Of a DNA stretch of 64,000 nucleotides, positions 11,832 to 64,000 are shown in pieces (position 1 is the stretch's first letter; each line of letters starts with the position of its first letter). The notes beneath the pieces were generated by a model. That model was not told where the DNA came from. It was given only the letters and a program-made list of their open reading frames with translations, and searched no databases. Both the position numbers and the translations under genes were made by a program. Source of the stretch: Eutreptiella sp. 'Long Island Sound 2002' (taxonomy: Eukaryota > Protista > Euglenida); NCBI GenBank assembly GCA_964036045.1, contig OZ038378.1, forward strand, positions 22,382,001-22,446,000. The letters run 5' to 3'.

Positions 11832-13238
11832 TTGGATGTCGATCAACCAATCGCTCAGACTTGCGTGGTGTGGCTCTCAAACACAGAGCTTCACCCAAGG
11901 GACAGGTCCATGTCAGTTCAGCCCCCTGTATCTCAAAGCCCTGTGCCGTTTCCCGCCGATGTTCACTCAATCCCCCGGCGCCCCCTCTGCCTCTTTCAGG
12001 CCCCCTCCCCGGGCCCTGCCCCTGGCCCCTCGGGCCCCGCTGCATCCTCGGGTGCAGGGGGGCGTGAGGACGCCCTTTTCCAGCGGCTGTGCGCCGAAGG
12101 CGGTGTGGTCACCGCCGTTGGGCTGCGCCCGATCCCCGGACCCAGTGTCCGCGGGCTGGTGGCCCTGCGCCCCGTCCCGGCGGGGGATGTGGTGCTGAAG
12201 ATCCCACTGGAGCACTGCCTCCGGGAGCCACGGTTTCTGCCACCGGAGCTCGTGGAGGAGATCGGGGGGGTGCCCGACAGCTTCACGTGGGACATTCGCT
12301 TGGGCATCAAAGTGCTGGAGGCCGTGAAGGGCCGCGAGAGCGCGCTGTGGTCCGGGTACGCGCAGCTGCTGCCCCGGCCGGAGACCGTGGCCTGCCCCAT
12401 GCTCCTGCCCCCGGCGCTGCTGACGGAGCTGCAGCACCCGTCGATGGCCGCGGCGGCGGAGGCCCAGCAGGAGCGGCTACGGGACCTGTTCCCGGACATG
12501 GTCCCGCCGGCGGACGCGCCGCCGGAGATGTTCCCGTCGCCGCTGATGTGGGCGTGGGCGATGGTGCGCAGCCGCGGGTTCGCGGCGGGGTCGGAGGCGT
12601 TTGCGTTCGTGCCGTTCTTGGACATGGCCAACCACGCGGACATCCCGAGCTGCAATTTCGAGTACGCCCCGGCGGACGGGTGCTTCTACCTGCGGGCGCT
12701 GCGGGCGCTGCCGCCCGGGGCCGAGGCGACCATCTCGTACGGCGAGGGGTACGACAACCAGCGGCTCTTCGCGCAATACGGCTTCGTGGAGCCCGGCGGC
12801 AACCCGCAAGACCGCCTCCCCGGGCTTGAGGGGTTAGCGAGCGAGGGCGTGGCGCTCTCGCGCGCGCGGCTGCAGGACACGCTGCGGGAGAAGGGGGTAG
12901 ACGTCGCGGATTTGGACGCGATGCAGCCGGGCGTGCGCGCGACGCTGGATTCCCTGCCCCTGACGGAGGACGCCGCGCTGCCGGTCGCGGCGGAGCTGCA
13001 GGCGGTCGCGCGGCTGCAGGCGACGCTGGAGGCGGTGTCAAAGGCCGATTTCACGACGCCGATGCAGGAGGATGTCGAGCTGGCGCAGCGCCTGTTGACT
13101 GAGGAGCGGGAGGGCAAGGGGGGCGACCCGCGGCTCGTGGCGTTGGTGTTGTACCGCGTGGAGCGGAAGTACCTGGTCAACGTGGCCCGCAGTATTTTGG
13201 AGGACCACAAAGCGGCCCTGGAGGCCCTCCAGGGCTAA
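11832..13238 (+). CDS. SET-domain protein-lysine methyltransferase, Rubisco LSMT/SETD3-like
   Basis: GC-rich ORF with GLVALRPV...LKIP, WAWAMVRSR, PFLDMANH, ISYG and LFAQYGF motifs, plus an LSMT substrate-binding-like C-terminus. The in-frame acceptor CTCTTTCAG (ending 11999) suggests the real exon starts at 12000 and the N-terminal exon lies elsewhere. Confidence 0.9.
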   Translation: MDVDQPIAQTCVVWLSNTELHPRDRSMSVQPPVSQSPVPFPADVHSIPRRPLCLFQAPSPGPAPGPSGPAASSGAGGREDALFQRLCAEGGVVTAVGLRPIPGPSVRGLVALRPVPAGDVVLKIPLEHCLREPRFLPPELVEEIGGVPDSFTWDIRLGIKVLEAVKGRESALWSGYAQLLPRPETVACPMLLPPALLTELQHPSMAAAAEAQQERLRDLFPDMVPPADAPPEMFPSPLMWAWAMVRSRGFAAGSEAFAFVPFLDMANHADIPSCNFEYAPADGCFYLRALRALPPGAEATISYGEGYDNQRLFAQYGFVEPGGNPQDRLPGLEGLASEGVALSRARLQDTLREKGVDVADLDAMQPGVRATLDSLPLTEDAALPVAAELQAVARLQATLEAVSKADFTTPMQEDVELAQRLLTEEREGKGGDPRLVALVLYRVERKYLVNVARSILEDHKAALEALQG

Positions 13239-22706: not shown

Positions 22707-23728
22707 GTGCTCCCCCTCCCACCTCTCTCATCCCACCTACTGACCAGGAGTTGCCCTTGGGGACTGACAGTGACCGTGGCAGTGACAGTGACAGTGACAG
22801 TGGGGCGATCCCGCTGTGTGCGCACTTTCGACAACGCTGAGCGCGAGGGTGGCCGAGGCTGCAGCACCTCCTGGGGCCCACAGCAGGATGACCACTTCAT
22901 GGCGTGCCCAGAGGCGCCAGCTGTGTTGTTGGGGTAGTTCCTCACAGAGGGGTGCGTCCCTGCATGGGTCCTGAAAATCTGTGTTCCTGCGTAGTCCCTA
23001 CCCTATTGCACTTGCAGCACTGCGTTCATGTCTCTCGGTGTGTACCTCCCCTGTTTTGTAGACACGTCAGAAAACATTCTTGTGCCATTATGTCTGCCAT
23101 GACGCATGTCTGCCACGTTTGCACGGATTGCTGTACAAAACTGTCCATGCACCGCCTGAGAATCTGTGCGCAGTTCGTGCATATTTCGGAACCCCCCGGG
23201 GGGTGGGAGGCGCTTGCCCCAAAAGTCCACGGCGCCGGAGGAAAAAATTTCCCGTACTTATGACGTAGCTGTAGTGGACAGGTCAGGTTGGGGTCCTCGC
23301 GCATAGTCCCCCTGGGGAGTGGAGGGTGTTGGTGACCGTTCCTCCCGGAGGTGGGGGGGGGGGGGCTTCGCGCGTGCTGGGTGGACTGTTTGGGAGGGGG
23401 GGGGGGGCGACAGCTGAGAGGCAAGCATCAGCGGTCGTACAGGGGGGGGGGGGATTTCGCGACGGGAATATTTCGCTGTGGGAAATTTCGTATTTCAAAT
23501 GTGTGCGAAATTTCCCGCTCAATTTTCAGGCCACTGTGCGAAATAAACCCGGCGCGAAATTTAGCCGCGATGCTTGATCTAGAATCATTTGAAATGCGAA
23601 AAGGACTAGTTGCCGCACAAAACAGAGAGGAACTTTGGGCACGAAATGCCAGTACTTGTCTGCCAGGAGGATGTGGTGCAATGTATGGCTCAAACAGTCA
23701 AAAAAAGCGCCAGAAAAAGCGAACAAAA

Positions 23729-23797
23729 CCCTCCGGGAATCGAACCCACGCCCTTTTGAACATCAGTGTAGGTGCATACCACTAAGGTAGGACAGGC
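23729..23797 (-). pseudogene. Degenerate tRNA-like sequence or tRNA-derived SINE head
   Basis: Minus strand has the A-box-like TAGTGGTA and B-box GGGTTCGATTCCCGG. Acceptor and anticodon stems do not pair well. Confidence 0.5.
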
Positions 23798-25070
23798 CTC
23801 TGCTCACATTGTGTTTATGGGCAGCATACACTCCAGATAGCCTTCCAAAAAAAAAGGAACATACTTTGGATTTGGGGTCACTTTGCAAAGCCCTGGTGAT
23901 GGGGTTTTTTACCAAAGATGGTCCGCCCGGTACAGTGGCCTGTACAGTGAACAATCCTGGAAGGTGCGAAATTTCCCGCTCAATTTTCATGCCACTGTGC
24001 GAAATAATCCCGGCGCGAAATTTTCTCATGCGAAAAATTCCCGGTGCAAAAAATTTCCCCCCCTGTAGGCAAGGTAGACACTTGCGAACCACTGGACTAC
24101 AGCCCAAGTCACGGCACACAACCCGCAGACCATCTCTAACCCCCCCCCCCCCCCGGGGGCCACCGGAAAAAAATTTGCGCCATTTTTTTGCGTACCCCCC
24201 CCCCCCCTCCGGGGGCAGCCCCCGAAAAAAAAATGAAACGCACTTGTTGGCTTTTTTATTCGCAAGCACGACCCTTGCTGTGCATTTGCATGTGCGTGAA
24301 TTTGCATGTGAACATTACAATGTTGCATTGTACAAAATTTGCACTTGAACTCCACTTCAGTTAAGAGTAGTCACTTGTGCATTTGCAAGTGTGGGGTTCT
24401 AGGGGCAAGAGGAAGAGGGCAATTAGCGAGGTAGTGCAAGGAGAAGGACACAACGGAAACGGTGAGAGGTAGAAGGTCAACGCAAGAATCATTATGTAGG
24501 ACAGTCAAGTCAAGAGTCCCTTTATCTCCATTTATACATTTTTGTTGCTCCCACTTCTCACATACTTTTTGCATGTCGTCAGCGATCAACATTGCATGGG
24601 ACAAGCGGGTCGCCCATGGGTGGACATGTCCCTGCGGAGAGCGGTTATCAATTATGGCCGCCCCAGACACCAGCCCTATGAGTTACATTGCAAGGGCAAG
24701 AAGCACCGCGCAGGCATTGCCCCCCTGCAAAGGGACATCAAACTTCAATGATGAGGTTTTTTAGTCAATCCTCCCAAGGGTCACAGCCATCGCAGCACGA
24801 ATCGTCAGCTGCATCGCAACCATCTAATGACCCCAGTGGCCCACACGGTGGTGCTTCCATTGAACCGCTGGTTGAACTCCCGGTCTCGTGTCCTATTCCG
24901 ACCAAGTGTATGGGTGTTCTGCCATTGGGGGTATCAAGTGCTCTCGTTCTTCGCGGGTGCTATCCCCTGTTGCGCCACGCCCACGAGAAGGTCCACCGGT
25001 TCTATGTTGATGGGGTTGGTTGATTCTCACGTGACCCTCCGTGTACCCGTGAGGCTCGGGTTGATGAATC

Positions 25071-54570: not shown

Positions 54571-56653
54571 TAGGGAATTTGTTATGTCCTCTTGTGTTCT
54601 ACTTGCTTGCCGTTGTCCCCCAGCCCATGCAACCCCACCCTGCCAGCTTTCAAAAGCGAGGAAAACTGAATTTTTGTGTTCTGACCGGCATGCCCCTTTT
54701 CTCCAATTGAATGTCACCTCCGGTGGCGCGGGATCTTTTCACTGTTCTGCCCGATAAAATTCTGACAGATACACCATGCACCATGCAACCCCTTCCCCGG
54801 AACCCCCTTGAATGGAGATGGCAAAACATTAGGTTCCGTTTTTTGGTAGCTTTTTTTTTTGGCTCACCACCAACCCACCTCTCTTCTTTCACAAAAGCAG
54901 TCCGCGGAGCCCCGGCGGCGCCGCTTACCTCCTTGGATGCCAAGAGGGAAGAGCGACACTCGGACTGGTGTGGTCAGCCAGGGGCATGGATGACAGCCGC
55001 TTTTCTGTGCAAAATGAACCTATTTTAATCAAGTTATCTTTTGGTTGTGACATGTTGTGATACATTCGGATACACCACTCTTTTCTTGCCTTTTTTTCTG
55101 CCCGCCATGCCTGACGCCGCACCCGATGGCAGCACCCGCACCCATGAGGTGCGGTATGAGTACAAGGGTCCAAGACCAGCGGAGCCGCCGGAGTGGCATG
55201 GCACCGGGGTAGTTGTGCGGGGTTTTTCTTCGACCCGGACGAGGCCCTCCCAACCTCTTGTCCGGGTCATCGTGCCGCCGCAACCAGCCCCCAGCCAATA
55301 GGTAACGAACCCATGACCCTCCTTGCCTTGTCCTTTCCTATCAGACCTTTCGCCCCCTTCATCTCTCAACGGGACAATGACGGATCATTTTTTTAATCTG
55401 TCGCAATCATTGCCTTTTCTGCCGTATGCTCCAGCGTCCCCCCCCTCGGCTGGATGGGGGGATGTGCCTCAATTGCTGCAGTACGGCGATGAGGGGGACC
55501 ACTCACCATGCGACTCGTACACTGCCAAACCTCTATCACAGTTGGCTTCGCCGCAACCACCCATGCTAACTCCCCCACCAACCCCGCCATCACCATGCAA
55601 CACTCCCCCCTCACCCATAGCCCCGCCACTAGGAAATCCTCCATCACCACCCTGCCTCAGCCCCCCCCGCCAAAGATCGTCCCAGCTCAACAGAAACCCC
55701 CCCCCCCCTCCCCAAGGCCACCAACCCCATCACCCCAAGGACCGAGCAGTGGCTGTCCCGGCCCCTAGCAACACTCGATGGCTGGTTTGATTTTGGGTGG
55801 ACAAGGTACGCCTTTGCCTCGAGGCGCTGGGGCCATGTATCCCTATGGAGGGACAACGGGTATCTAGGTCCCGCTTCCTAGAAAGATGCCTAGAGCGGCC
55901 CACATGATCCTCGCCCGTTCCATTCCCCGTCCACCCCGCTCCGCCGTCCCCAACGTCTCCAACTTCCCACGAGCAAGGAGGCCCCTGCCAACGGGTCAAG
56001 CCAGCCTACTAGGGCTGATCTCACACCAACGGACCTCGTTGTTGGGCCTTTGCCCCCCCCCACCCCTGCCCCTGCCCATAGACGCCGCTGGTGCTAGGGC
56101 ACCCACAATCACCACAATCCCGCCGTGTCAAGGGGCACCTTCGTCTCAACCCCGAGAGCACACCTTCTTAGGAGGCCTGAATTGCCCGCCCTGGTGACCC
56201 TCAAGAAGTCGAATTTGTTACCCCGAACTGGGGTGTTTTTTTAGGGTATGAAATGCAGGGGGGGGGGGGGGGTCACTGTTTCAGTTTATGGTTTAAAAGC
56301 CCTTTTCTGCACCATACCAATGTTCCAATTCTAAACAGCCAATTTCAACCCCCAAATCAGCCAAATTCCAAAAATGAAGCGAAATTTCGCCACTCTTTTG
56401 AAATTGGCCGATATCATACCCCTTTTTCATGCATTTTTTCACTCATGAGACGCGAAATTTCGCCACTCCTTCATTATTTGATGTTTTGATACCCTCATTG
56501 TGTCTTTGTATATTTGTGTGCTAATTTGATTTCATTTGTCCCGAAATTTGTGCCTTTGATGAATTTTATGAACATTCCGACAATCTTGACATGGAGTATG
56601 TTCCCTGTTCTGAGGCAAATATGTGAGTATTTCCTTTGAGGTGACCACATGAC

Positions 56654-58910
56654 ATGGATCCGGCACTGCTAAGGGTGGTTGTCGCGAGTCGTGAGTTTCT
56701 GAACGTTGATGACCTCATGACGGATGTTGCCAATGGGGGCTCTGCAAGGTTATTGGCTGTCGGGGCCCTGGCAATGCGGACAAATCGACGATCACGGAAG
56801 GACTTTACACGGTTGCTGTTTGCCCATGGAACACGGAAGAAGCCCTGTTGGTACACTGTTTTCTCAAATCAATTGCTATGCTTGTGGCGACTTCTGAGAA
56901 AGATGGCAGCCCCTCATGCACAGTCCGAGGATGTACCAATACCTATTTCATTGAGCCGATTGTTGGCTCCCAGAGGACTTGTGCATGCAGCTATGCCCTC
57001 ACTTGCTGCCAATGCGCGACAACAAGCAACTTGGCTTTGGCAAAACATGCAGAACCACCAGATGGCGCTCTGGTATGACAACTGGGTGAAAAAGAATTAT
57101 GGGGTGGACCCGCTTCATCTTGACCACTCCATAAATTGCACAGCTGTGGCCGTGTTACATTTGCCAGCCCTACCACCATTTCCGGGTCATGTCTCACTAC
57201 TTGATGCCGTTCAGACAATTGGGGCACATGTTGATGCTCTACAACTTCGTCATGCGGATCTGTTTCGGCGTGTTAATGCCCTTCCTGACATGATTCAGCG
57301 TACCTTTGTCAGAGTCCCCCTGGACATTGTGCGGCAAAATGTGCTATCTGTCCGCTGGCAACCGATGATGCTGTCTGAGCTACGGTGTGGAACCAAACTG
57401 GATCACTTGAAACTGCTAAATACAATCCGGCATGTGCAGCAGGCAACTCGTCATGATTTACCTTTGTGTGTGGATATGAAGATTCACTATGAGCTCTTGA
57501 AATACCTCTATGGGCAGAGTTACACTTCATGGAATTTCCAATTGCACTTGTCAAGCCTCCCACTCATCTACGGGGTTTGGCACCCGTACAAGCATATGAT
57601 CACCATGCTTTACCGCAACTTTATGCCCATTATATGTGTGATGGAGAGAGTACACACCGATTTCAAGGAAGGGGATGCAGTACCAACAAAGGTTAAGCTC
57701 CTTCATATGGAGAAGACAATACTGGCGCTTTGTCTGAATGCTGGCACTTACCTACCAAGAGTTCAGGCAAAACTTGATGCATATGCCGTTGCGGCGCAGA
57801 ATGGACCATTGACGGACATGCAGTCTAAAAGCAAGGAGCTAATTTTGGGGTTGAAGGTGTTGTTGAAGGAGTATTGTCCTGTTGCATTTAGGATTGGTGT
57901 CCTTGTGAGAGACTGCAATAGGGCTGCTAGAGATCCCGGAAGTGGGAAGAATGCCTTGGCACTGCTGGAGTCTTGTTTGTTGGTTATGCTTTCTTTGGTG
58001 GGGAATCAATAGGAGAATGTGGAGTACATCAAGACATTGGTGGCTGCTCTGGTCACATGGCAGCGTTGGCACTCTCGGGTGCCCGGTTGTATTCACAGTG
58101 AGGAATATGGGGAGGCTATGTTGAGCAGGTTGTGTGCACAGTGCCGGATATGGACTACCATCACATCCCTGAGTGGCCCCTCCGAAATTTTTGTAACGTT
58201 GAGTCAGACCTTGACAGGGAGGAAGAACGTGCGGTTCTCACTGACAGAGGAGTGTGTGAAGCGGTATGGGTCCAATTTGAGGAGGTTTATTCTGAGTGTG
58301 TCTGTTGCATCCTTGCCCATTGTACAATGGAAGCCGCCACCCCTTTGGGTAGTAGAAGCAGTTGTGTTGCGTACTGTAGATGACCTTCAGTTTCCTAGTA
58401 CATTTGCAGCCGTTCCACCACGTAGCGTTCCTTTTAGTGTGTTCCACAAATATATTAGGACCCTTCTTCGTAAGAATCCCCCAAGCGATGACCATCTTAC
58501 GGTTCTACAGCAAACGGTGCCTCCATCAACGATTGCCGGGCAACGGAATGTGGGTATCCAGAGAGTGATGCAAATTACCCGCCCGCCCGAGCCCAAACCC
58601 AAGCCCAAACCCAAACCAGGGAAAACGGTTGCACAACGAGGTGCCCCTCACCCCAGCCCCCCCCCCAAGACACGGTGCACCCATCGCCAAATCTGCCCCA
58701 AGGAATCCAAAACCATCAGCCAAACCTGGCCCTCAGCAACCGCAGAATAGGGTACAGCATTCGAATGGGGGGGGGGGGGGGATGATGGCCCCCAGGTGGC
58801 CTTGTTTTCCACAGTGACAGTGATAACAGTAGTGTCTCGGATGATGACGACATAGTAGCTATTCTGGATGAAGAGGAGGTTTTTGGACAGGATACTTCAC
58901 AATGGGACTG
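56654..58910 (+). CDS. DUF6589-like putative DDE (RNase H-fold) transposase, with one in-frame TAG and a frameshifted tail
   Basis: ORFs 56654..58012 and 58019..58750 are in the same frame. Ordered motifs: WYDNW...NCTAVAVL, LPLCVDMK, YGVWHPYKH, EY (after the TAG), PGCIHSEEYGEAMLS. An acidic tail ends at ~58910 after G/C-run frameshifts. A possible upstream intron is 56623..56673. Confidence 0.65.
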
Positions 58911-59284
58911 ACATACCTGTTGTCTTCACAATGTACCAGATACTGTTTTTAGCACATTTTGGTTTGAGACGCGAAATTTCGCTTGCTTTTGGGTTTTGTG
59001 TGTTTTGAGCCTGTGTCCCACAGGGTGCTGTTACACTGCTGCCACTTGTACCACTAATGTGCTATTCATTTTTGTGTGTGATCCCGACTCTCATGGTTTT
59101 ACGTATTACATGTTGCTGAGGCTGTCATGATGTGTGATTTCAGCTGCTCTGTGCAGCATTCCTTGATGTCCCCTTGCAAAGGCTATAATTGAGGAATAAG
59201 TGGTCCGGAAACAACCAAATCACCACTGTCTGTCAATGTGATCCATGCCCAGAGCACCCTGATTTCCTCCAAGCCCCCACTGTC

Positions 59285-61999
59285 ATGTCATCCGTACCCA
59301 CAAAACCAAACACCAATGTGCCTGTGGCCCCAGAGCCATCCTCTTTATCACAACCCTCGCAGGGGTCCTCCGAGGGCCCCAGTCAACGGAATCCGGTCAG
59401 CCGGGGGAACAAGAAGGCCACTCCGAAAACGGACACCCTAGCAGATGCCGTCCAGAAGACAATGGTGTTATCCCACAAGGTCCTGCGGGTGGATGTTAAC
59501 CGCGAGCATGGGCAAATCCGGACGGTCAGCGAGACCAGACCAAAGCTGCGGCTGGAGGATTTGGCAAGGGTACCTCCCGTGGGGATCATCAAAGGATTAC
59601 TGGTCTAGCCTGGCAATTGTATGTTGCTGCACTTGCTTCTACACGTCTGTCGTTTGCATACTGGCCTGGGGACGAATTTTCTTCTGTTATTGCCTCAGTG
59701 GGTAGCTTCTGGATCATTGGTGGCGAACATGTCTTTTGTGCGGCGAGGAGACTGGCCAATGAACGTGAGAAAAAGAATCTGGACCCTTTGAGATGGCAGC
59801 TGGAGTTTGAGTCTATGGTTCTGAAGTGGGATACTCCCGTGCGCCAGAGGAGACGTCTAGCCGGCCACCAGCAGACAGCGCAGCTGTCAGGCACAGGAGC
59901 ATGCATGAGTGAGAGGGCTGTGCTGCTGATGGAGAACTTGGAGGAGCCTGAGAATGCTGATCTCGGTCTCACTAACGTGTGCCGCCAGATATTGGAGGAG
60001 GCTGGACTGACAGCTGATGAAGGAAGCCTGGTGTGTGACTGTCGCTCTCATGCGCATTGTTGTCCCAAAAAAGTTTGGTTGTATGCACTGTAGGATTCTG
60101 TGGCACGACGCTGGCTACCCTTGGCTAGAATGATTGATGCAACTGGCTATACAGCAATTGATGGAATTCGCAATTTCGAGAACAGGAGGATCCCCTTGGC
60201 ACTTGCATCATTCAAACCATTGGAGGAGCTCATTGGACCACACTTTGCACAGTGTGCCAAATACATGGAGACTCCACGAGCCACTGTTGCAGGAGTGGCT
60301 AAAGTGTTATGTGAATGCCAACGGGAAATGCGATGTGACTGGATTGTTATGCATCCTGACTGTCCAGAGGAGTTGGTTCACCCATCCCGCAGTATGTTGT
60401 GCAGGCATCCTGAATTGCACTATTAAATCATCGAATTCTGTTGATAGTGGCGAAATTTCGCGTCTCAGGTGGAAACATGGTCTGGACACCCAGTTTTTCT
60501 CTATAACAGGAAATACATCCGAGATTGCTACCCTACAGCGTCATATCAAGGGGATTGGTGCATTGAAGTTCCGCTGTGCATGCTGGGTGTACACTGATGA
60601 CATGCCTATGCCTCCCTGGGACTCTGTGTGCAAGGCCGAATTCTGGACATCCTCAAAATATGTAGACTTCAGGAGCCACCTGGCCAGACCTCGGAATACC
60701 TTTGACATTGCCAGCTCCGAAGGGAATGTGGTTCACTTGAAGACAGTCTCTGGTTCTGGTGCAGATGCTCTTGGCGGTGAGTCCCCCTTTCAGCTTTGTC
60801 TTCTGAATCCTACTGCCATTTTGAATGCTACTGTCGTTGGGTGGCCGTTCATACTGGCTGTCATTGAGGTTCCAAAGGGCTGGTCCACGGGTCTACCACC
60901 TCTTGCTGTGCGACATGTTTCAATGGGGAAACCACTGGTGGTTGCTGGTGAGTTGGCGGACGTACGAATCATCATGAGCCAGCTGCAGACTGACCTAGCT
61001 GAGGAGGGAGTGCATCAAGTGAGTGTCATGGTGTACAACACTGGCAGCCGCAGTCCGAATTTCACTATGATGCAATCAATGATGACAATTGTCACGTTGA
61101 CTCAGATTCCAAGGAAGGTACATTGCCCCCTGTGAATTGATACCCCAAATCAGCCAAATTCGAAAAATGAAGCGAAATTTCGCCACTCCCGCCATTTTGC
61201 CCAATTTGCACCATCTGTTTAGCTGCCGATGTACGTTACGTTCCGTGAAGGCCCATTACCCAGTATCCTGTGTCCTAAGGCTGTTCAATGGGTGCTGGAT
61301 GTTCTGAAAGTCCCGATGAATCTTACAAACTGGGTGCTGGTGGGGTCTTGCTCTCCAAAGCTGGCTGTCCAGCTTCAAATTCGTCTCAAGTCGGAAATTT
61401 TGGTTGTATTTGGTTTTCTCAAAGCTGCGGTTGATGAACTACCGAAAGAAACTGTTGAGCTTACAACCGGCACTTTAAGAGGGGCTAACTCTCTTGCCCC
61501 AATCTACTGGGAGTTTGTGTTGTCACAACTGGACTAGGGTGTGCCCGTCGACACCACTGGAATGGCTTATGTACCTGATGACCCTGATGAACAGCACTGC
61601 ATGGATAGTATGCCGGACGTGGATGCCAAGCCCAAGGGAACCCCAAAGCCGAAGGCATCTAAGCGAAAGCCCCAGAAGGGGGCAGCCAGCAATCCCCCCG
61701 GTGTCGATGCAGGTGGCAGTGCCGAGCCCCAAGCAACGCCTGCGAAAAGGGCTCAATCACCCTCTGTTGAGGCTCCAGCGGCGCAACATGATGAGGAGCA
61801 CACACAGCAGCAGAGTCTGCAGTTGGTCACGCCACACAAAGGCACTACACATCCACTGTGTGAGCCGAAAGGACCGTCACCGTCACCACAGGGATTGGAG
61901 AACTTTGCGAGTTTGGTGAGTGGTGGGACGGCACCAGCAGCCCAACCACAGCAGCAACCTCAAAAAGGAACGCGTTTGGGGAACAAACGACGACGGTGA
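59285..61999 (+). CDS. Spliced gene: ParB/Srx-like domain, helical region, possible degenerate methyltransferase-like fold, disordered tail; two in-frame TAGs
   Basis: GT-AG introns 59619-59698, 60031-60093, 60392-60509 and 61118-61222 each keep or restore the frame. Motifs are GQIRTV, GSFWIIGGEHVFCAARRL and LAGHQQ. TAGs at 59606 and 61535. Confidence 0.65.
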
Positions 62000-62659
62000 T
62001 TTGGTGTTGACTGCTATGATGAGATGATGGTGACTGCAGAAGCACCATCCTCTGAGCAGTCATTTTGAATTTTAATTTGTGTCTGACTTTATTTGATTTG
62101 TTATTCTGACACACCCTTTGTGGGTATTGGCACATGGAATTGCCTTTTGTAGGCAACATTTGGTAATTTCTTTGATGTATGTTTGTGTATTGATTGATTG
62201 TAAAGAGTTCCTTATGGTTCGAATCGTATGCCTGTGATATTTTGTATCAATCTTGTACTGTGGCAAGCAGGCAATGCACTGACAGTATTTCATACCTCAA
62301 TATACTGCATTTTGCCAAATGTGGCGAAATTTCGCATCTCATTGAAATTCCCTGAAAATGGGGGTCTGTTTCAACATACATCAGTGTACTGTTTCACAGT
62401 GTGTCATCTGTACACAACAGAACCCCTTTAGTGGACAATGCAATTTGTCCTTGAGTGCTATTTCTTTGAATTTTAATGCCTGTTTTGGATGGTTTGCAGT
62501 GTCCTCAATTGGAGGCAAAATGGTCCAATTGGACAATATGGGGCATGATTTCAGTTCAAAACTTCATACGTTGTGCGCTGTGTGCAATTAGGGGGTAGTA
62601 ATTCACCATTTTTTTCACACCATGAATGGCCTTCATTTCGCAGACCCCCCCCCCCCCCA

Positions 62660-64000
62660 GGCAATTAAGGCCTCCTGAGACCTTGAAGAAGATGGCACGT
62701 GGTGACCCGCCCAACCAATCCAAACCCAAGCTTGCCCCCGCACCCGGGAACGGTGCCACCCCTATCGCCGCGGTCAACCGCACCCAAGAGCCATGCTGCA
62801 TCGTACCCACCCAGCAGTGGCGCCGAAACCCGTCCGTACGTATTTCAAAACATAAACAAGGTTCCATTCCTATGTCCATTGCTTGCCACGGCCGCCGTAG
62901 CATCTCTGTAGTGTCTATCGATCCATGTCCCAGAAGTCTGCCTCGGATTGCGCCTCAAGTGTGTGGCAGTGCGCTGTGGACATTGTAGACAGGAATGTCT
63001 GCCCCGCCATAGAGGTTGGGGTGAATGCCGTACCATGAGTGATGAGGAGGATATAGCGGGTACGTTGAAGTGGGATTTGCTTCGTCCAATTGCAAGACTC
63101 TGCTTCGCGCCAAAGCCGCCGTGCTTCATCTCCACTGTCGACCGCGCCATTTTTTTGCGAACTATCGTGCCGAGCTAGTATCTACCAGCAAAGTATGACA
63201 CCACGCTTGAAAGGATGGTCAACAAAAAGAATTGAAAATGGAGGAAATCAGGGCAGTTCAGGCCCAGCTTTGGAATACGCCTTCTCGGCACCGCATGGCA
63301 CCGGGGATGATCTGGCGCCATGTTTGACTCTGTTGCCCCCCACCCGTGGCGCAGTTATTCCTTAGGGATTCCGATACTCCGCGGGACGCAAAAAGCAACA
63401 GGATGTGGCAGCTACTCAAGTCCGTGCTCAGGGAACCTTACGGCGAAAAAGCCGCGTGGACGCACGACCAGGTGAAAGATTGGACAAAGAACGCGAGCAC
63501 GTGCGCGGTGGAAAACGGTGGCTCATCCAATATCCACCAATCGTCATCATAGTTGAACCCGCCGAGGGATGACAAGCCTGGTGTGCCCCGTCTGCTGGTG
63601 AATGATGTGTGTTCCGACGATATTACGGGAACCATCCTGAACGCCCATACAATTGACATTGAGGGAGTCCACACCCCTCTCGGGGGCTGCAGCAGTGCTG
63701 TGCGCGGCGACGATGATTTCCCTAGGGGAGCGCGGAAGCGCGTCCTGCAGATGGCAGAGCAAATTGATCGGTCGATCCGCCCCGTACCACATGATTGCAA
63801 CGGCCTGGGAGGAATGGAGGTCCGTTTAGCAGTTGCTGGTGCCAAAAATGCCCCCTTGCGACTGTCGCACCCGCAAGCAAAACTGGCCAACTGGTTGGTG
63901 CGTGGGAGGGCCCGCGAGGTGGACAGGGAGGAAATCTGCATGACATGGCATAGGGGCTGCAGACCCCACTTGAGCCGTGGATGTTGTGATTCACAGCACT
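62660..64000 (+). pseudogene. Decayed Cys-rich coding-like region running off the window
   Basis: CVAVRCGHCRQEC and ...WHRGC fragments in shifting frames with many stops. Confidence 0.3.

Follow-up and report, generated by a model that had tools for sequence, protein, structure and literature searches.

Transposons of the hAT superfamily generate target-site duplications of 8 base pairs (bp), or of 5-7 bp in some subgroups, and are characterized by a hAT dimerisation domain and a BED finger. Members of the P superfamily likewise duplicate 8 bp and possess a THAP DNA-binding domain. For a third group of proteins, DUF6589 (PF20231), which occurs in fungi, molluscs, rotifers and cnidarians and has no assigned function, we found in the literature only mention in passing. 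Accessory genes with ParB-like products have been described for giant transposons of algae. Sola1-1_Ec32 of Ectocarpus, a Sola1 element of 21.5 kb, contains a ParB-like plus DNA methyltransferase accessory gene (PMC12477816). In giant Plavaka elements of red algae, the gene of PAG3, a ParB-like protein with a putative 2-oxoglutarate (2OG) oxygenase domain, adjoins tandem inverted-repeat arrays, and self-binding has been proposed; the ParB assignment in this case is a weak HHpred match (E 0.29), the domain databases being empty (bioRxiv 10.1101/2025.02.11.637652). The DNA studied here, hereafter called the window, is a stretch of 64,000 nucleotides of the euglenid Eutreptiella sp. 'Long Island Sound 2002' (assembly GCA_964036045.1, contig OZ038378.1, positions 22,382,001 to 22,446,000). 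Its segment 56167-62679 very probably represents a cut-and-paste (class II) DNA transposon that is abundant in this genome, in the form of a decayed copy of the autonomous type. The element is approximately 6.5 kb long and contains two genes, a predicted DDE transposase gene (gene 1) and a conserved partner gene (gene 2).

The limits of the element were determined by alignment with other copies. Four loci of the same assembly (L001, L003, L004 and L005) are 85-93% identical to the window, and their alignments begin at window positions 56163-56167. Those of L001, L003 and L005 stop at 62680-62685, while the alignment of L004, which has lost its 3' part, stops at 60650. The 20-bp arms of a terminal inverted repeat coincide with these limits of the repeated unit. 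The left arm (56167-56186, plus strand) begins with CTTAGG, and its inverted partner on the right (62660-62679, minus strand) ends with CCTAAG. Alignment of the ends of the copies gave the 20-bp consensus CTTAGGAGGCCTTAATTGCC, from which the left arm of the window deviates by one mismatch, and within the 64 kb the consensus matched these two positions only. The repeats are directly flanked by the identical 5-mer ACCTT at 56162-56166 and 62680-62684. Duplications of this fixed length and of variable sequence were found at seven insertions, five of them being perfect (window ACCTT, L003 CCCAT, L005 TCGTT, L015 ATATG, L002 CTAGG) and two being one base off (L001 AATGC/AGTGC, L009 GTAAG/GTATG). 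A subterminal G run at 56258-56272 (inverted repeat I5) is mirrored by a C run at 62645-62658 and is also present in other copies. The sequences flanking the insertion (55300-56160 and 62690-62990) are C-rich and rich in proline codons, with long C or G runs. An earlier inspection of the same DNA, the sequence-only reading, had placed the module at 56340-62400, which is too small, and had been unable to define ends and target site; both emerged from the alignment of copies and flanks. Its proposal that the module is a DNA transposon of the autonomous type and belongs to a DDE lineage without a name is supported by these ends, by the duplications and by the fold described below.

A word search with a piece of gene 1 yielded 34 relatives, the majority of which were fragments of 75-94% identity on megabase contigs of one assembly. 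Dozens of copies of the element are spread over different contigs, and they include non-autonomous deletion derivatives: L003 and L005 are internally deleted and retain both ends. Contigs from four public runs cover the element evenly, with a summed depth in the thousands versus about 40 for single joints, and they revealed more deletion joints (e.g., 57113>62135 and 58139>62028). The conservation of both genes and their predicted introns would also agree with an ordinary host gene pair sharing a regulatory motif. This explanation is refuted by the terminal repeats, the 5-bp duplications at seven insertions, the dozens of copies and the internal-deletion derivatives, and we assign practically no probability to it.

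In the deletion copy L003, a segment (12327-12524) equivalent to window positions 58900-59021 runs in the opposite direction to the remainder of the element. Next to other copies there are a gene with a zf-C17orf113 Pfam hit (L001, 3596-4324) and a reverse-transcriptase fragment (L002, 21611-21917), indicating that the element sits among other repeats. Elsewhere in the window (23340-24230) we noticed a short structure with runs of G in its left part (23353, 23442) and of C in its right part (24137, 24193), in which a 60-nucleotide unit containing near-copies of the palindrome described below (GCGAAATTTCCC) is repeated 461 bp apart. This structure may be a small non-autonomous relative from a related family.

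A sister family is represented by L002 and L015 of the same assembly, which share 92% identity across 6.55 kb. The gene order is the same, and the proteins are 35-45% identical to those of the window. The terminal repeats comprise 25 bp and likewise begin with CTTAGG, bordered by the perfect duplications CTAGG and ATATG mentioned above. Intact transposase open reading frames (ORFs) exist in this family (P0224, 722 residues; P0225, 747 residues; L015, 7001-9169). The 90% cluster of P0224 has 267 member sequences, and thus the sister family looks young. As judged from these sequences, this suggests that it has been recently, or is currently, active in this genome. The transposon family is also widespread in environmental eukaryotes. 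An apparently complete element of 6.5 kb with an intact transposase of 762 residues and perfect 23-bp terminal repeats was found on a metagenome contig (L009).

Gene 1 (56654-58911, plus strand) was delineated by its ORFs, by homologues, by the fold of an intact relative and by comparison of its tail with P0225. It is a predicted DDE transposase pseudogene, in which two ORFs of one frame (56654-58012 and 58019-58750) are separated by a single TAG at 58010-58012. The translation carries LWYDNW, CVDMKIH, YGVWHPYK and HSEEYGEAMLS in this order, so that the pattern YDN / VDM / GVWHPYK / SEEYGExxLS reported by the sequence-only reading is present in full, and these motifs coincide with the most conserved columns of the family alignments. 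An acidic tail is conserved as well. In the intact sister protein P0225 this tail continues in frame, and in the window it is found in another frame (58815-58911), where it can be reached only via a frame change upstream of approximately 58650 plus a candidate GT-AG intron of 63 nucleotides (58752-58814). Gene 2 of the window has an in-frame TAG at 61535-61537, through which the sister family reads. Introns were considered for the TAG codons at 58010 and 61535 and rejected in both cases, since intact relatives read straight through. According to its sequence, the window copy can make neither protein; the former description of both genes as almost intact was generous.

Searches with gene 1 disclosed a large protein family. 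A ten-member profile run against 1.84 billion representatives retrieved 1,225 proteins with E<=1e-3, of which 263 reached E<=1e-30; a length of 600-840 residues is typical. The ten relatives that were looked up reside on short metagenome contigs and are named only "hypothetical protein", with no Pfam domain. Pfam detected no domain at all in the gene 1 family members, and a PDB sequence profile search with gene 1 gave no match. A word search with a 97-sequence profile returned only paralogues from this genome and no Pfam-annotated relative, and a metagenome locus scan with alignment A3 gave just five short contigs.

The fold was modelled on the intact relative L002:9839-11914 of the sister family with the 97-sequence alignment, which gave a predicted local distance difference test (pLDDT) score of 90.3 and a predicted template modelling (pTM) score of 0.88; an earlier fold of gene 1 on a 10-sequence alignment (pLDDT 47) was discarded. 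The best Foldseek matches in the PDB were Hermes, the P element, ISCth4, Transib and RAG1. Re-scoring of these matches by VIA yielded Z 9.9 for the P element, 9.8 for Hermes, 7.4 for HzTransib and 6.7 for RAG1. A VIA comparison with 48,161 representative solved chains, which was independent of Foldseek, gave the P element (Z 9.9), Hermes (8.6), Tn5 (7.3) and ISCth4 (7.1), followed by retroviral integrases and RAG1, the first 14 rows consisting entirely of DDE transposases, integrases or RAG1. The model thus confirmed the RNase H fold postulated in the sequence-only reading, with the P element and Hermes as nearest neighbours. In the model, the aspartate of W-x-D-N (D150) ends strand 1 (145-154), the aspartate of LLVD (D282) comes after strand 4 (279-281), and the EE..E residues (E489/E490/E493) lie on helix 490-505, after a helical insertion domain of about 130 residues. 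An additional conserved D (PLD) and the W-H of GVWH are near the candidate catalytic residues in the sequence. A helical N-terminal region of about 120 residues is also conserved. By its model, gene 1 is predicted to encode a DDE transposase with an RNase H-like core and an all-helical insertion domain, belonging to an unclassified group.

The P element transposase (6p5a) and Hermes (6dww, 8edg, 4d1q) share with the gene 1 model the RNase H-like DDE core and the large helical insertion before the catalytic glutamate. The P element was aligned over 291 residues with a root-mean-square deviation (rmsd) of 5.8 at Z 9.9, Hermes over 264-266 residues with an rmsd of 5.3 at Z 8.6-9.8. These best solved matches raise the question of whether the protein belongs, despite strong divergence, to a superfamily already known, namely P or hAT of the hAT5 type with its 5-bp duplication. 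The glutamate motif EExxEAxLS presumably recalls the hAT C-terminal motif, and hAT groups with 5-bp duplications (hAT5) are known (PMC12730594). On the other hand, Hermes and the P element are only 8-11% identical to the protein in sequence, the Z scores for the two are tied and favour neither, and Pfam found no hAT dimerisation (PF05699), BED or THAP domain in any scanned member. The duplication comprises 5 bp; on the hAT side it is only the fold that is similar to Hermes, and on the P side the fold is similar to 6p5a. Moreover, the whole-length shape matches are DUF6589 clusters and not hAT or P proteins. Membership in one of these superfamilies is therefore unlikely in our opinion, and we retain the unclassified group.

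In an ESM Atlas shape search, the model matched a DUF6589 cluster with a template modelling (TM) score of 0.63 in both directions over 539 residues, and also two unnamed eukaryotic clusters (TM 0.62-0.67). By language-model features of the Atlas, 29 of the 30 nearest clusters were DUF6589. Gene 1 resembles DUF6589 in whole-length predicted shape, in these features and in the order of the conserved motifs. The designation DUF6589-like, which had been put forward from the motifs, accordingly holds for predicted fold and features, yet the protein lies outside DUF6589 as defined by Pfam, whose hidden Markov model (HMM) never matched.

Gene 2 (59285-61999, plus strand) was traced by exon-wise tblastn to L002, L008 and L009 and by tblastx. 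Five exons are predicted (~59285-59602, ~59653-60030, 60094-60398, 60469-61117 and 61223-61999). Splice sites read from the sequence predict GT-AG introns at 60031-60093, 60399-60468 and 61118-61222 (105 nucleotides), and the boundaries of the first intron do not fit GT-AG. The sister family (L002) is devoid of the last intron. The position of intron 60399-60468 is common to all lineages, and in L006, L008 and L009 the ORF breaks after an RSM-ending motif just where it does in the window. Behind gene 1 and co-oriented with it, a homologue of gene 2 is present in the window, L001, L002, L015, L006, L007, L008 and L009, the last four being metagenome contigs of different samples, of which L006 and L007 are shorter and partial. 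Exon-wise tblastn from the window gene gave E-values of 7e-18 to 3e-21 for L002, 1e-11 and 3e-5 for L009 and 2e-5 for L008. Since each of the six lineages examined has gene 2 behind gene 1, with intron positions in common, we regard gene 2 as a core partner and not as captured cargo, as the sequence-only reading had it.

All lineages conserve two short motifs of gene 2, one in exon 1 (HGQ.R) and one in exon 2 (FWVLGGQH..AA), where the window copy reads GGEH and L001 reads GGQH. We take their order and spacing to recall the N-terminal domain of ParB/Srx, which is a lead only. The name ParB-like given to the gene earlier rests on these two motifs and is unproven; all searches with HMMs and with features were negative. 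Neither a methyltransferase (including PF01555) nor an oxygenase domain was detected within the 450 C-terminal residues, and a PPW-like stretch is not kept as a (D/N/S)PP(Y/F/W) methyltransferase motif across the lineages.

Both genes are accompanied by a private palindrome, as had been noticed previously. The 12-mer GCGAAATTTCGC occurs in six exact copies (56379, 56452, 58971, 60450, 61172 and 62324), all of which lie within the element, the rest of the 64 kb being free of exact copies. When one mismatch was allowed, nine matches were found in the window versus about 0.1 expected by chance. The full site of about 22 bp is asymmetric outside the 12-mer and occurs in both orientations. Site 1 (56376-56395, plus) is part of a 46-bp unit repeated at 61143-61188. 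Site 2 (56446-56467, plus; the 22-bp form) pairs as an inverted repeat with site 4 (100% complementary) and with site 6 (95%), these repeats being I4 and I7. Site 3 (58965-58986, plus) is located in the spacer between the genes, site 4 (60446-60467, minus) inside the gene 2 intron 60399-60468, site 5 (61169-61188, plus) inside the GT-AG intron 61118-61222 and site 6 (62321-62342, minus) in the right subterminal region.

An own palindrome of 16-22 bp is present in each of the four lineages examined for one. The core of the window family, GGCGAAATTTCGCC, was found six times in the window element and seven times in L001. The palindrome of L002 and L015, CTGGCCGAAATTTCGGCCAG, occurs 12 times inside L002, with one degenerate match outside the element. 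L008 contains eight copies of TTCGCTCCATGGAGCGAA and L009 contains 13 copies of GCGCGCC..GGCGCGC. Shuffled sequences gave 0-0.2 copies compared to 6, 12, 8 and 13 in the window, L002, L008 and L009, respectively. In all four lineages the sites are situated near both ends, between the genes and in gene 2 introns. The two families of this genome (window and L002/L015) have the core CGAAATTTCG in common with changed flanks. Lineage-specific palindromes in the same position classes fit sites that co-evolve with a dimeric element-encoded protein. Among dead copies, palindrome sites and flanks are both about 95-97% identical; as the sites are thus as conserved as their surroundings, this comparison carries no weight either way on function.

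On this basis, a mechanism can be sketched. The transposase would bind the ends, excise the element and reinsert it across a 5-bp staggered cut. The palindromes may be binding sites of a dimeric protein encoded by the element, most likely the gene 2 product, whose N-terminal motifs resemble ParB/Srx, and this protein might mark, bridge or modify the element's own DNA. As a tentative proposal, gene 2 would then encode a transposon-borne eukaryotic relative of ParB that loads on parS-like, lineage-specific palindromes and bridges, protects or modifies the DNA of the element. If this were true, a whole superfamily of cut-and-paste elements would possess a self-recognition module co-evolving with its sites.

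The positions of the sites also allow for another function within the same transposon. A pair of them is 200-300 bp away from the left end, and another, inverted relative to site 2, is about 340 bp away from the right end; this is the usual layout of subterminal transposase sites. The palindromes might hence be extra binding sites of the transposase, like the subterminal repeats of Ac/Ds or En/Spm, with gene 2 doing other work, e.g., countering silencing or modifying chromatin. Deletion derivatives retain the subterminal palindromes, the conserved helical N-terminal region of the transposase could, by its model, bind DNA, and gene 2 is without a demonstrated DNA-binding fold. However, palindromes are also found deep inside the element, in gene 2 introns and in the transposase coding sequence of L009, which is unusual for end-recognition sites, and the published inverted-repeat arrays of algae adjoin the ParB-like gene. 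We consider this function possible and rather doubtful.

In L009, palindromes also lie within the intact transposase ORF (1239-1935), where they are translated as LRAQARN three times. These stretches are variable loops, partly in regions that other homologues lack. In the window, the last intron of gene 2 duplicates in its left half (61143-61188) the left subterminal unit 56350-56395 with 98% identity, and L001 and L005 carry a more diverged version at this place. From these sequences, conversion between palindrome-bearing sites within one copy is suggested. An intron-less variant was considered for the joint 61129>61216 in contigs of the public runs and rejected, because direct alignment demonstrated that L001 and L005 keep the intron with a variant left half.

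It is also conceivable that the palindromes are not protein sites at all but act as DNA or RNA hairpins (terminators, intron definition, small-RNA triggers) or represent tiny mobile palindromic inserts spreading in the element. They are placed in introns and spacers in both families of this genome and inside coding-sequence loops in L009, and the palindrome-bearing intron 61118-61222 is absent from the sister family, its left half duplicating the left subterminal unit. Different palindromes in the same position classes of four lineages, and the core shared by the two families of this genome, fit a co-evolving sequence-specific protein better than structure alone. Thus, this explanation appears quite improbable to us.

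Several results weigh against the interpretation as a DUF6589-like transposon whose ParB-like partner binds the palindromes. PF20231 did not match any of 16 translated gene 1 pieces of family members, among them pieces of the window, P0020 and proteins of L006, L007 and L015, when three pieces were scanned at E up to 1, six at E up to 5 and seven at E up to 10. The placement of the candidate D/D/E residues fits a DDE fold, as expected, by model topology only. The exon pieces of gene 2 had no match in Pfam, NCBIfam, PHROGs and PADLOC, the alignments of both exons had none among PDB sequence profiles, and an Atlas feature search was blank. The gene 2 ORF of L015, which reads through an intron without a stop, was also negative in Pfam and PDB. 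The arginine of the GxxR loop of ParB/Srx is absent, the loop of gene 2 being GGQH followed by V, S, K or L. The partial contigs L006 and L007 are devoid of a GAAATTTC-core palindrome, their own palindromes not having been searched for. Binding of the palindromes by an element-encoded protein is putative, being deduced from the sequences. The four public runs behave like DNA, with even cover of introns and spacers, short contigs and no splicing shown, so that introns and expression remain predicted.

By the transposon described here, DUF6589-like proteins gain a concrete role as the transposase of an element whose ends and duplication length are known and which has non-autonomous derivatives. 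A second protein and a private palindrome always accompany a large group of eukaryotic transposons without a name, corresponding to 1,225 cluster representatives. Should the second protein bind the palindromes, a clean system would be at hand in which to study self-recognition by a transposon and the handling of its DNA, an idea that has recently been raised for the giant transposons of algae. The intact sister-family copies in this genome are candidates for an activity assay.

Compared to the P element and Hermes, the element is distinguished by a duplication of 5 bp instead of 8 bp, by its CTTAGG termini, by the lack of THAP, BED and hAT dimerisation domains in Pfam searches and by its conserved partner gene. 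With Transib and RAG1 it shares the 5-bp duplication and a DDE core with an insertion domain. The gene 1 model matches HzTransib (Z 5.0-7.4) and RAG1 (Z 5.6-6.7) less well than it matches the P element and hAT, similarity in sequence is absent, and the termini are CTTAGG and not of the CAC heptamer type. Hence, no signature domain or terminus of hAT, P or Transib is present. The accessory proteins of the algal elements are like gene 2 in that they are encoded by a second transposon gene, have a ParB-like-looking N-terminus and are associated with element-specific inverted repeats; PAG3 also shares the lack of matches in domain databases. The algal elements differ in their transposases (Sola1 and EnSpm/Plavaka) and are giant (17-21 kb), whereas here an unclassified transposase is encoded by a compact element. 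Unlike the algal accessory proteins, gene 2 has no detected methyltransferase or oxygenase domain. It is constant across the whole family, while the algal partner gene is a mobile cassette, and its repeats are dispersed single palindromes, some of which reside in introns, and not tandem arrays. The general idea of a ParB-like accessory gene next to inverted repeats was thus already published for algal transposons in 2025; the element of Eutreptiella differs in the transposase family, the compactness, the constant partner and the dispersed, intron-resident palindromes.

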